Under the pieces are notes generated by a model that saw only the letters and a program-made list of their open reading frames with translations, made no database searches and had not been told where the DNA came from. From sequence record MH791404.1: a DNA stretch of 64,000 nt. One strand, 5' to 3'. The translations under genes and the position numbers were made by a program. Shown here in pieces: positions 34,691-37,920 of this stretch. The first letter of the stretch is position 1. Every line of letters starts with the position of its first letter.

Positions 34691-34740
34691 ATAGTACCAG
34701 AAACAAAAATGGAGTCAAGCGATTTCTCGCAAGACTCCAT
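34691..34740 (-). terminator. GAAA-tetraloop terminator fused to early promoter
   Basis: AUGGAGUC-UU-GCGA-GAAA-UCGC-UU-GACUCCAU-UUUU; TTGACT-16-TACTAT. Confidence 0.75.
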
Positions 34741-34744
34741 AAAA

Positions 34745-35077
34745 TTATTTCTTGAGCATACCAGTAAGTTTGTTGTGTGCTAGGTTAAAGCTTTGTTGTG
34801 TATCTGACTGAGACCGTTTCCAAGTAATCTTACCAAAATCCTCGATAGGACTGATGTTAACCTTGGTGATATCTACGTTTTCTTTTACCCAACGCTTCCA
34901 TTCTCCCATCTGGATTTCATGGAAGCGTTTTGCCTCACGCATACCGGCAGTATTCATTTTTGCTTGAACACTGTTCAGAATAGAAATGTATTGGTTTATA
35001 ATCCGGTTATAATCTTTTGATGTTTTCATTTGAAACGATTCGTCGATTCGTTCGAAAAATTCTTTATTCTTTAACAT
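34745..35077 (-). CDS. putative internal head protein
   Basis: N-terminal MLKNKEFFE resembles T4 capsid-targeting sequence and the neighbour's MLKTKELFE; basic. Confidence 0.55.
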   Translation of the reverse strand: MLKNKEFFERIDESFQMKTSKDYNRIINQYISILNSVQAKMNTAGMREAKRFHEIQMGEWKRWVKENVDITKVNISPIEDFGKITWKRSQSDTQQSFNLAHNKLTGMLKK

Positions 35078-35483
35078 TTTAGTAATCCTCNNNNNNNNNN
35101 NNNNNNNNNNNNNNNNNNNNNNNNNNNNNNNNNNNNNNNNNNNNNNNNNNNNNNNNNNNNNNNNNNNNNNNNNNNNNNNNNNNNNNNNNNNNNNNNNNNN
35201 NNNNNNNNNNNNNNNNNNNNNNNNNNNNNNNNNNNNNNNNNNNNNNNNNNNNNNNNNNNNNNNNNNNNNNNNNNNNNNNNNNNNNNNNNNNNNNNNNNNN
35301 NNNNNNNNNNNNNNNNNNNNNNNNNNNNNNNNNNNNNNNNNNNNNNNNNNNNNNNNNNNNNNNNNNNNNNNNNNNNNNNNNNNNNNNNNNNNNNNNNNNN
35401 NNNNNNNNNNNNNNNNNNNNNNNNNNNNNNNNNNNNNNNNNNNNNNNNNNNNNNNNNNNNNNNNNNNNNNNNNNNNNNNNNNN

Positions 35484-36003
35484 AATCTATATCAGAACCA
35501 ATGATATTCTTGGCTTCATTTAGCATAGACTCAAACTCGTCTTGTATCATAAGAGATTCAACGAGCGATTCCATCATTGCGCTTTTTTGTCCAGCAGCTT
35601 GTTGTTTATGAGAAATTTTACCACCAGTTCCTTTTGGGAACACAGTTACTATATTGATTTCTCGACCCTTTACAGAACCAACTACAGAGCGGTTTTCCGA
35701 TTGGGAATGGAACATATAAGTACCATTCTTAATCTTGTTTGCTTCTACGTGTTTTACCATCTTTCGAGCAAAATCTTTCCACTCTTCCGCCGTTTTAGCA
35801 GCGGCTCGCTGGTGTGCGCGAGCTTGAGCATGAACAGAACTTTGAACCTTAAACGCACCAACCCGCATAGAAACAGGTAGCTTTGATTGTTTGCTAAGTT
35901 CGAATTCCTGATCTTTAGTAAGTTCGACCTTTTGATTTCGGCTTTGTGTCATTTGTTCATCAAACCGGGTCAGGGTTTCGAACAATTCTTTAGTTTTCAA
36001 CAT
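35484..36003 (-). CDS. putative internal head protein with RegB/BECR-like RNase motif (3' end in N gap)
   Basis: MLKTKELFE; FKVQSSVHAQARAHQR; C-terminal INIVTVF strand. Confidence 0.55.
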
Positions 36004-36031
36004 GTTGTTTTCCTTTCGTAGATCTACATAT

Positions 36032-36169
36032 CTATTTAGGAAGTAGGAAAACCTCAACAAGAACAGCAATAATACTCACACCAACCACAATAACCTTATG
36101 TTTCTTTTTCTTCGATACCATAAAAGCAGTACCTAAACCAAACCCGGTTGCAAACAGAGCAAAAGTCAT
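36032..36169 (-). CDS. small membrane protein, 45 aa
   Basis: Read by hand; two hydrophobic segments. Confidence 0.55.
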   Translation of the reverse strand: MTFALFATGFGLGTAFMVSKKKKHKVIVVGVSIIAVLVEVFLLPK

Positions 36170-36178
36170 AACATCCCC

Positions 36179-36319
36179 TTAAGACATGGCAAGAAGAGAT
36201 ATGGAAGAAAGCCCAGCTACGATATAGCCAGTAGTGAAAGCGCGTTGATATGCTGCGCGGGTAGCCTGTACCGATTTTACGAAACAAACACCAGCAACAA
36301 AACCAAGTGCGATTACCAT
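36179..36319 (-). CDS. small membrane protein
   Basis: Start MVIALG after AAGGAAG. Confidence 0.55.
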   Translation of the reverse strand: MVIALGFVAGVCFVKSVQATRAAYQRAFTTGYIVAGLSSISLLAMS

Positions 36320-36385
36320 ATCTTTCTTCCTTCTCGTTAGTTGATATGAGTAGTATACACGAGTTAGATATGAGATCAACTACTT

Positions 36386-36772
36386 TTAAAAAAGAATTTT
36401 CACGATAGTAAAAATTATTGCGTAATGAACAAGATGGTGTGCCATTTGATCTAGCCCGAGATGATACCAAAATACCGGCTCTTGTGGTGTGTGACCTCGA
36501 CTTAATTCAACTTTCATTTTATCAATAAAGAAGTGAGAGATAAAATCAAAAAGAGTAAGACCGAGTACAGCCCATATGTTCAAACCCATAATGATCGCAA
36601 CGAACATTGTCATTAATGCATGTACAGTACAATGTGCAGCCAGTGGTGTAACCCAACCAACCTCTTTAAATTTCCCAAGCATATACTTACCTTGTAGAAG
36701 GTAATCTGCTGAGTAATGCTTTATTTGGTAAAACACCAATAACCCAAAAATTGTGCTAATAGGTTCAATCAT
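36386..36772 (-). CDS. DUF3307-like membrane protein
   Basis: H..AD..LQ, H...H, HF.ID..K, DQ..H motifs. Confidence 0.8.
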   Translation of the reverse strand: MIEPISTIFGLLVFYQIKHYSADYLLQGKYMLGKFKEVGWVTPLAAHCTVHALMTMFVAIIMGLNIWAVLGLTLFDFISHFFIDKMKVELSRGHTPQEPVFWYHLGLDQMAHHLVHYAIIFTIVKILF

Positions 36773-37920
36773 TTTAAAAAGTCCTTACAAACAATGTGCT
36801 CGTCAAATACTTCTGGATACCCGAGAAGGTTCGCCAGACGTTGACGACAGGCTACCACGTTAGATTCAACTATGTCAAACCCGAATATCTGGTTAGCGAT
36901 AGTTTCCTTGTCATGCCCCATATCTAACCGACGTTCTGCGATACGGTATAGGATATTCCCATCACCACACGCCGGATCACAGAATGACCCATCCCAGTTA
37001 ACAACACGGTCAAGTAACATATCAGTAACCACGTCTGGGGTAAACACCTCGTGTGTGGATTTCTGGCGCTCTAAATCAAACTCAGAAGCAACTCGATTCT
37101 TATCCTCTGTGTGCGTCCCTGAATGGTATCTACCTCGCGTTTCTACGTCATAGTAGGGTAACACACCCATATAACCACAAATCCAATCACGAATCGTTGG
37201 GAGAGGTTTGGTGAGGTCTGGGTACGGTACTGATGCTAGGGTTCCAGAATCGAGGTGTTGATTATTCTTATACAGTGCCAAGAACACCCTAGCATAATCA
37301 GATTTGATATAATCCAAGAACTTATTAGCTTCTTCTAAAGTATCAAATCCATAGTGGTGCCATTTAAGATTTGGTTTCGTTTCAACAGAATATTCTTTTG
37401 GAACCATAGTAAAGAAATCCGCGTTAAACCTTTCACCTGCTATTGGTACGTGTCCACGGATTAATCCAATGTTAACGAAATAGTTTCCTTCTGGATTCTG
37501 GCTATTTAAAAGGTTCTTTTGAATTGGTAGCGCTTCATATAGCTTTAAGATCTGGGTTCCGAAATAGTTTAGTTCATCAACCTTCATCCTATTTCTGCCA
37601 TTAGTCATAGGCCCATATACATCGATATACCCATCAAATGGGATACCCATTATTGTATGGGTTATGGATAATGGAACAAACAACCCAGCAGAAAAATAAA
37701 GGTTACCATCGATTAGTTCCATCGATGTTATGTTTTCTCCAACCACACTTTTAAATTCAACCACACGTTTCTGTTCTTTTACCGGGCGACGATTGAAAAA
37801 TGGTGCAGATGGATGCACACAAATTATCTCTCTCCCAATACAACTCGCTTTGTTAAAGAAGTCTAAGTGAAGATTCCTGTTATATGGTGGATTCATTATC
37901 ACGTAATCATATGAACTCAT
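36769..37920 (-). CDS. N6A/N4C DNA methyltransferase, circularly permuted
   Basis: N-terminal YDYVIMNPPY; C-terminal EVFTP, FCDPACGDGNIL, GFDI, CKDFLK. Confidence 0.85.
   Translation of the reverse strand: MSSYDYVIMNPPYNRNLHLDFFNKASCIGREIICVHPSAPFFNRRPVKEQKRVVEFKSVVGENITSMELIDGNLYFSAGLFVPLSITHTIMGIPFDGYIDVYGPMTNGRNRMKVDELNYFGTQILKLYEALPIQKNLLNSQNPEGNYFVNIGLIRGHVPIAGERFNADFFTMVPKEYSVETKPNLKWHHYGFDTLEEANKFLDYIKSDYARVFLALYKNNQHLDSGTLASVPYPDLTKPLPTIRDWICGYMGVLPYYDVETRGRYHSGTHTEDKNRVASEFDLERQKSTHEVFTPDVVTDMLLDRVVNWDGSFCDPACGDGNILYRIAERRLDMGHDKETIANQIFGFDIVESNVVACRQRLANLLGYPEVFDEHIVCKDFLK

Follow-up and report, generated by a model that had tools for sequence, protein, structure and literature searches.

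Two adjacent genes of Aeromonas phage Assk, here called g1 and g2, encode small basic proteins that begin almost alike, in a region where the surrounding genes are all on the minus strand and all annotated as hypothetical. The question raised by this locus is what such proteins are for, and whether one of them is an enzyme that enters the cell with the phage DNA. The source is record MH791404.1 (marked 'UNVERIFIED'; Straboviridae, Ceceduovirus, T4-like), and the window, the whole stretch of DNA analysed, comprises its bases 1-64000. The explanation that we favour, and to which we would give an even chance of being right in its entirety, is that g1 and g2 form a late unit of T4-kind internal head proteins and that the N-terminal domain (N-domain) of g1 is most likely an injected endoribonuclease. 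The cassette consists of the following features:

34701..34740, minus strand: intrinsic-terminator-like hairpin and T-run after g2, closing the cassette.
34745..35077, minus strand: g2 (assk_96), 110 amino acids, starting MLKNKEFFE, predicted to be all-helical.
35079..36003, minus strand: g1 (assk_97), starting MLKTKELFE at 36003, with the stop placed by analogy with phages AS-szw, AS-zj and G2; interrupted by the assembly gap.
35091..35483, no strand: assembly gap of 393 N inside g1, also in the public record MH791404.1.
36033..36039, minus strand: CTAAATA, late-promoter-like, 29 nucleotides upstream of the g1 ATG.

The likeness between the two N-termini is beyond chance. The original prediction had pointed to a shared 9-residue start, and a comparison with every Met-initiated open reading frame (ORF) of at least 40 amino acids in the whole Assk genome gave scores of 58-62 for g1 and g2; the runner-up, assk_334, likewise a late gene, reached 26. 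The isoelectric points (pI) are 9.4 for g1 and 9.8 for g2, or 10.2 and 10.0 for the mature g1 core and mature g2.

Two genes flanking a gap that might hold a third had been the original reading of this interval, but the gap-free relatives AS-szw, AS-zj, G2 and CC2 place the gap inside g1. Between the same flanks, AS-szw, AS-zj and G2 have 344 nucleotides and one continuous ORF of 291 amino acids, and CC2 has 393 nucleotides and an ORF of 304 amino acids; none of the four has a separate gene in the interval, which rules out a third gene there. In the relatives, g1 ends in a TAA at window positions 35081..35079, 1 nucleotide ahead of the g2 ATG. The gap falls just where g1 differs from phage to phage: the AS-szw and CC2 types share 92% identity over residues 1-175 and 23% over the rest. 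From its N-terminus, g1 is laid out as a leader, the conserved N-domain and a C-terminal module that varies and is hidden in the gap. The flanks of AS-szw equal those of Assk except for the bases touching the gap, and the gap-adjacent Assk letters at the g1 end are of the AS-szw type. The N-run has exactly the length of the CC2 interval, which points to a CC2-guided assembly of the Assk record; this is also consistent with the record's annotation, which refers to 'hypothetical protein CC2 102', and with the many N-runs elsewhere in the window, and the length is uninformative on the reading frame in Assk. Altogether the window holds more than 60 N-runs, as fits a reference-guided assembly. A single coding sequence (CDS), assk_97 at 35071..36003, is annotated across the gap in the record; since 344 and 393 differ modulo 3, its C-terminal tail (...GLLKC, overlapping g2) is a frame artefact, and the practical consequence is that the public Assk CDS for g1 is mis-framed over a reference-length N-run.

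Signals at both ends of the cassette suggest that g1 and g2 are likely a small late transcription unit of promoter, two genes and terminator. CTAAATA, reported in the original prediction about 30 nucleotides upstream of the first gene and located at 29, is, judged by its distribution, the late-promoter core of Assk. Genome-wide there are 51 copies, with 25 and 19 in two 50-kb structural-gene blocks and 1, 4 and 2 elsewhere; 30 of them sit 20-45 nucleotides upstream of an ATG-started ORF, and the genes so preceded include those for the portal, tail tube and neck proteins, gp24, tail fibres, fibritin and baseplate proteins. In the window the motif occurs once, on the coding strand, against 10.4 copies expected. 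Late-promoter-like words are strongly avoided in the window, an early region, when both strands are counted, and TATAAATA is present in 2 copies against 4.4 expected, neither of them on the transcribed (minus) strand. The strong terminator with which the genes had been said to end corresponds to the hairpin and T-run after g2, with a folding energy of -21.1 kcal/mol (z = -5.07; 0/200 shuffles fold as well). The hairpin emerged from direct folding, a simple terminator scan having missed it owing to its internal bulges.

Promoter motif and hairpin are kept letter for letter in AS-szw, AS-zj, CC2 and G2 despite changed cassette content; AS-zj has an extra leader-bearing gene, g3 (90 amino acids), inside the promoter-terminator unit, downstream of g2 and outside the gap interval. 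The same layout of hairpin, cc-TAAATA, cassette and hairpin recurs with different contents in phage ZPAH1 and in a metagenomic contig (L024), and the order of genes shifts from g1-g2 in Assk to g1-g2-g3 in AS-zj, g1-g3-g2 in phage 65 and g1(N-domain only)-orf-g2 in ZPAH1. Internal-protein loci had been described to us as hypervariable anti-defence cassettes; the differing contents agree with the first half of that description, and the anti-defence role stands as background. In Aeromonas phage 65 (NC_015251.1 177392-180685) two frameshifts, either real or sequencing errors, break up the g1 orthologue, and the record gives it as one ORF that starts at an internal Met (ST65p295) and another, separate one (ST65p294); an intact close relative of the phage 65 gene was found in metagenomes (P0005).

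The leaders of the two proteins are delimited as follows:

35039..35077, minus strand: g2 leader, codons 1-13, with the site Ile11-Asp12-Glu13.
35956..36003, minus strand: g1 leader, codons 1-16, with the site Phe14-Asp15-Glu16; a second site, Leu7-Phe8-Glu9, is not conserved.

Both resemble the capsid-targeting sequences of T4, as had been proposed from the shared 9-mer together with cleavage after Glu, but the conserved Glu lies outside that 9-mer. Glu9 of g1 is Ala in AS-zj, CC2 and G2, whereas the [L/I/V/F]-x-Glu site that aligns family-wide falls at g1 Glu16 and g2 Glu13. The family alignment has, opposite g1 residue 14, L in 32 members, I in 10, V in 6, F in 3 and M in 1, and opposite residue 16 Glu fills 50 of the 56 occupied rows; the g2 site, [I/L]11-x-Glu13, has an invariant Glu in six orthologues, and its g3 equivalent is Leu-Asp-Glu. 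T4 propeptides are 10-19 residues long, with capsid targeting residing mainly in leader residues 4 and 7 and processing in residues 8 and 10 (PMC9026906), and prohead cleavage occurs after Glu (PMC5694885). T4 ipII and ipIII begin MKTYQEFIAE and ipI begins MKTFKEF (read from NC_000866, the accession printed in PMC2993671). A strict leader pattern drawn from the T4 positions (hydrophobic at 4 and 7, L/I at 8, Glu at 10) fits 25 of 76 short representatives of the g1 family; among 678 background ORFs it fits 3, and T4 ipII and ipIII themselves are two of these. Natural N-termini in the family include MKTFKQFLEE, MKTFEQFIVE, MKSFKQFLNE, MKTFRQFITE and MKSLADFLAE (Aeh1p081). Over g1 residues 1-20 the confidence of the structural model is low (predicted local distance difference test, pLDDT, ~52), as expected of a free propeptide.

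Assk also encodes a gp21-type prohead protease (assk_294; Peptidase_S77, E 1.3e-70) and a T4-type scaffold. Similar sites recur beyond the leaders: the g1 inter-domain linker (residues 145-198) is crowded with [LIVM]-x-Glu sites, fusion proteins of the family hold the same Glu-site junction directly ahead of the g1-type domain, and g3 is 61% identical to the C-terminal module of protein P0008, the Ile/Leu-Asp-Glu-Ser junction included. Capsid-targeted internal proteins in variable cassettes are an established kind, and by analogy with T4 the Assk locus is likely a late, capsid-targeted internal-protein cassette whose products would be packaged and cleaved.

It is rather improbable that g1 and g2 instead stay out of the head as cytoplasmic late proteins, for example a late-phase RNase and its partner, with N-termini alike through duplication or a shared translation-initiation region. 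This would sit well with the position of the locus in an otherwise early, hypothetical-gene region of T4 style (many small ORFs and an N6-adenine methylase, with RNA ligase, td and frd further on), with the fact that the T4 RNase RegB is itself cytoplasmic (PMC3014915), and with the literature searched, which holds no proteomic evidence of packaging. The 27-nucleotide 5' ends of g1 and g2 are identical at 23 of 27 positions in DNA (by inspection), which could reflect gene conversion; yet the differences are partly synonymous, so that the peptide itself appears to be selected. Moreover, the leader pattern matches T4 ipII/ipIII and recurs in the unrelated g2, g3, assk_334 and assk_348 as well as in distant family members, and its junction is kept inside the fusion proteins.

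A hidden Markov model (HMM) search of 1.84 billion representatives returned 91 proteins with the g1 N-domain at E <=0.001, mostly of 130-190 amino acids and unannotated, and a word-indexed search gave 10 clusters. Family members are 20-50% identical to one another, their common core corresponds to g1 residues ~28-125, and 76 of the 91 are stand-alone proteins of ~130-190 amino acids. All genomic contexts examined are T4-like phages or phage-like contigs. Cultured carriers are the Aeromonas phages Aeh1, PX29, phiAS5, Ah1, 65, ZPAH1 and Ceceduovirus, the Vibrio phages vB_VmeM-32 and EniLVp02 and a Variovorax phage, with every copy annotated as hypothetical, and two of the metagenomic contigs examined carry gp32, DsbA or Gp23 genes. 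g1 and its relatives match only PHROGs 18967 and 17629, both of 'unknown function'. Five representatives are fusions in which the g1-type domain is C-terminal, joined to an S-adenosylmethionine (SAM) lyase (P0035), a Zeta-toxin-like kinase (P0049) or RelA/SpoT-type enzymes (P0075, P0076, P0080).

The predicted fold and its key residues map to the window as follows:

35641..35871, minus strand: g1 core of RelE/ParE/RegB type, residues 45-121 (two strands, two helices, three strands); predicted.
35806-35808, minus strand: codon of g1 Arg66.
35830-35832, minus strand: codon of g1 His58.

The AlphaFold2 model of g1, built from a 59-sequence alignment, has a pLDDT of 84 overall and 93-97 over residues 31-120. 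A helix at residues 30-39 precedes strands 45-48 and 51-55 and helices 57-66 and 72-88, which are followed by strands 93-100, 105-112, 115-121 and 139-143 and then by C-terminal helices; the topology of this predicted structure is that of RelE/ParE with an extra N-terminal helix. RegB has been described likewise, as a RelE/YoeB-related alpha/beta fold with an extra N-terminal helix (PMC3014915). The C-terminal IVTVF strand highlighted in the original prediction is formed by residues 118-122, within the predicted last core strand. Foldseek against the PDB gave nothing below E 0.001; the best matches include ParE (6xrw at E 0.075, 6x0a, 8c26) and HigB2 (5ja9, 5mje), and the PDB matches span E 0.075-0.5 with target template modelling (TM) scores of ~0.43-0.54. 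Against BFVD, family members came first, then several uncharacterised phage proteins and, at rank 14, 'Site-specific RNA endonuclease [Escherichia phage Ec_Makalu_003]', the UniRef/UniProt name of RegB homologues, as a weak match (E 0.011, probability 0.99, TM 0.38/0.46, root-mean-square deviation 4.0, 107 columns). For the BECR/RegB-type fold that had been proposed, the predicted topology is in agreement, but the Foldseek matches are weak (at E >=0.075 in the PDB). BFVD ranks 5-13 are larger uncharacterised phage proteins seemingly with a domain of the same fold (E 4e-5 to 2e-3), among them a 575-residue 'sigma-70 like domain' protein, a 602-residue protein of Sinorhizobium phage phiM12 and a nucleotidyltransferase-domain protein.

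The His/Arg motif noticed in the first protein, FKVQSSVHAQARAHQR, spans g1 residues 51-66. Among the 59 aligned members, His58 is the sole fully invariant residue, followed by Arg66, Trp75 and Glu145 (58 each), Ser100 (56) and Glu33 and Thr120 (55 each). A second His is found at position 79 in 35 of the 59, and 10 of the 11 members with His99 are without His79; this exchange looks like a relocated catalytic residue, although it may be a single clade event.

This pattern bears on whether the domain is an enzyme at all. A capsid-targeted but non-enzymatic g1 domain, acting as a basic DNA-associated carrier or a stoichiometric defence inhibitor that brings variable cargo modules, is unlikely but deserves to be weighed. 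All characterised T4 internal proteins (Ip1-3) are inhibitors of the type IV restriction enzyme GmrSD and share only the leader (PMC12373910), and IPIII of T4 can carry proteins fused to it (PMC9026906). Fusion of the g1-type domain to varied modules on either side, the basic g1 core (pI 10.2) and the lack, in Assk g1, of the second His common at position 79 would all suit such a role. Against this, it is typical of catalytic sites that a His stays invariant, and Arg, Glu and Ser nearly so, in a family whose members are only 20-50% identical, the apparent shift of the second His between 79 and 99 points the same way, and the 76 stand-alone representatives have no cargo.

A toxin-like fold need not mean RNA cleavage, and the domain could reach the cell with the DNA and poison host DNA gyrase as ParE does, which we regard as very unlikely. 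ParE toxins (6xrw, 6x0a, 8c26) are the best PDB matches and Assk encodes its own topoisomerase II subunits, but HigB2 and the RegB-named protein score in the same range or better, Foldseek scores do not discriminate within the superfamily, and the His/Arg/Glu set is better suited to acid-base RNA cleavage.

The proposed link to RNA cleavage was, in the first place, a match of the motif to T4 RegB, with His48 and Arg52 as catalytic residues. In its T4 record, RegB does have the motif at residues 46-56, opposite g1 residues 56-66, and His48 falls on the invariant His58; the Arg fared less well, g1 position 62 being R in 32 and Q in 26 of the 59 members, and Arg66 is the conserved one instead. 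In RegB the catalytic histidines are His48 and His68 (PMC3014915). When the family was compared with T4 RegB or with 24 RegB homologues in hhalign, one local stretch aligned, g1 48-71 with RegB 38-61, putting the RegB-family invariants His48 and Arg56 on g1 His58 and Arg66. The profile comparison that had been suggested as a check nonetheless came out negative, with hhalign probabilities of 0.2-0.5% and no match of the g1 family to PF10715, and PDB sequence searches yielded no RegB chain. Together with the late-promoter motif and the leader, these results refute membership of g1 in the RegB family. A tblastn search found no RegB homologue elsewhere in Assk (best E 0.39). Taking the predicted fold class, the invariant His with its Arg/Glu partners and the weak RegB-named match together, it is reasonable but unproven that the conserved N-domain of g1 is an endoribonuclease, and on the strength of the predicted fold an injected RNase is a plausible description of g1.

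As the fold is that of toxins, g2 could be thought to neutralise g1 in a toxin-antitoxin-like pair, an arrangement that we consider extremely improbable. The genes abut (1 nucleotide apart in relatives), the fold predicted for g1 is RelE/ParE-like, and g2 is small and helical: its model is confident and all-helical (pLDDT 87; leader 61-65), with its own orthologue as the sole structural relative in a Foldseek search of BFVD. However, g2 is basic like g1 (pI 9.8 vs 9.4), bears the same leader and is limited to one Aeromonas-phage clade (5 clusters of homologues, all in Aeromonas-phage-like contigs), whereas the g1 family is far wider and does not co-occur with g2 beyond that clade; other genes can stand between g1 and g2, and most family members are without a g2-like neighbour. 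The pair was judged unlikely on the grounds of the basic charge of g2, the shared leader and the patchy distribution. By the same marks, and being absent from most family loci, g2 does not qualify as a cognate antitoxin beside g1.

Several observations weigh against late, head-packaged proteins with an endoribonuclease among them. As to lateness and packaging, TAAATA lies 20-40 nucleotides upstream in only 6 of ten hand-checked family lineages, Aeh1 and three fusion genes being without it; the leaders of g1 (16 residues) and g2 (13 residues) are longer variants, the P3 residue of g1 is Phe rather than Leu/Ile, and Glu9 is not conserved; and no virion proteome was found in the literature for Ceceduovirus, Ishigurovirus, Aeh1-like or Vibrio carriers of the family. 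As to activity, every fold match outside the family is weak, no RegB structure is among the top 50 PDB Foldseek matches, and the hhalign probabilities of 0.5% (T4 RegB) and 0.2% (24 RegB homologues) are not significant. Pfam, NCBIfam and PDB sequence searches with g1, g2, g3 and their relatives returned nothing meaningful. Assk g1 has Ala at position 79, although it does have His85 and His99. Toxins of the RelE/ParE type generally depend on an antitoxin, of which there is no sign at g1; the ParE-type members of this fold are not known to be nucleases.

If the favoured explanation is right, the leader would dock each protein on the prohead scaffolding core, and the gp21-type protease (Peptidase_S77) would then remove it after the Glu of [L/I/V/F]-x-Glu, at Glu16 in g1 and Glu13 in g2, and probably also cut the site-rich linker between the g1 domains. 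As in T4, the mature basic proteins would remain packaged beside the DNA and be injected into the cell along with it. There the N-domain of g1 would most likely act as an endoribonuclease on host RNA before phage gene expression, an activity suggested by its predicted fold, and g2, g3 and the swappable C-terminal modules of g1 would be further cargo. We speculate that the leader may keep g1 harmless until it is inside the prohead.

The cargo would be new, a toxin-type nuclease fold joined to other enzymes by the same junction, of which no description was found in the literature searched. A wider proposal, which we offer tentatively and would rather doubt than believe, is that a family in T4-like phages delivers a RelE/RegB-fold endoribonuclease in the virion, made late, trimmed and injected, and that a leader-and-junction system strings it with other effectors (the SAM lyase, a Zeta-like kinase, a RelA/SpoT-like enzyme and a J-domain protein) as cleavable polyproteins. 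Were this true, T4-like phages would inject catalytic weapons ahead of gene expression, head-packaged enzymes, beyond restriction inhibitors, would be a general arm of T4-like host takeover, and the leader with its Glu site would be a general, modular loading device. In any case, the analysis provides a function-level lead for PHROGs 18967 and 17629 and draws a testable link between RegB-like RNases and the virion.

Two Assk genes outside the window and the genes upstream of the cassette are described here in their own right. The gene assk_348 (MH791404.1 203659-204510, plus strand; 283 amino acids), immediately ahead of hoc, has CTAAATA 30 nucleotides upstream. Its product has a leader-like N-terminus and is a Zeta-toxin-like kinase (Pfam E 2.2e-7, phrog_5268) that shares 42% identity (E 9e-76) with the N-terminal part of the metagenomic P0049, where that part is fused to a g1-type domain. 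Directly upstream of the P0049 gene is a tRNA-like 3' end (L022:2200-2281), and T4 ipI adjoins the tRNA cluster. The product of assk_334 (194781-195794, plus strand; 337 amino acids) starts MSKMFNELFES, with CTAAATA 23 nucleotides upstream, and has a DnaJ J-domain at residues 20-66 (E 6.9e-9); its gene adjoins that of the deoxynucleoside monophosphate (dNMP) kinase, the place of ipI in T4. A homologue in Vibrio phage vB_VmeM-32 starts MKSTKQFLME behind TATAAATA, two genes from the g1 homologue, and assk_334 is possibly an injected J-domain protein. On the upstream side of the cassette (36032-37920, minus strand) are two membrane-protein genes (45 and 46 amino acids), a 128-residue membrane protein and the 383-residue N6-adenine methylase. 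This membrane-protein/methylase synteny is kept in ZPAH1 and the metagenomic contig L024, where a terminator-like hairpin parts these genes from the cassette promoter.

Among known systems, T4 RegB resembles g1 in being a small basic phage protein, in its RelE/YoeB-related alpha/beta fold with the extra N-terminal helix (predicted for g1) and in the local Ser-x-His-x3-Arg-Ala-x-Gln-Arg match that sets His48/Arg56 on His58/Arg66. It differs in that regB has a sigma-70-type early upstream region and no leader, whereas g1 has a late-promoter motif and a leader, and in that its catalytic His68 has no counterpart in Assk g1. With the RelE/ParE/HigB toxins g1 shares the predicted core of strand, helix, helix and three strands, and these are its top PDB Foldseek matches; however, the E-values are at least 0.075, Pfam matches none of the 59 family members save one (weakly, to Gp49, E 0.035), and g1 is phage-borne, with a leader and extra helices and without an antitoxin partner.

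IPI, IPII and IPIII of T4 have in common with g1 and g2 a short leader with hydrophobic residues and an [L/I]-x-Glu site, with many family members near-matching ipII/ipIII, as well as tandem genes, small basic products, a variable cassette and a gp21-type protease in the same genome. The mature parts are without sequence similarity, the g1 and g2 leaders have 16 and 13 residues rather than 10, the PHROGs matched by the g1 family are not named as internal head proteins, and the Assk locus is not beside the lysozyme gene or gene 1; moreover, the known T4 proteins inhibit type IV restriction enzymes and do not have enzyme-like folds. T4 Alt and the ejection proteins of phiKZ and SPN3US have other folds and sizes than g1. 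They are enzymes or large proteins loaded into the head, where the prohead protease cuts them behind Glu, in some cases at more than one site and at either end (PMC9026906, PMC5694885); for the g1 family both loading and trimming are proposed.

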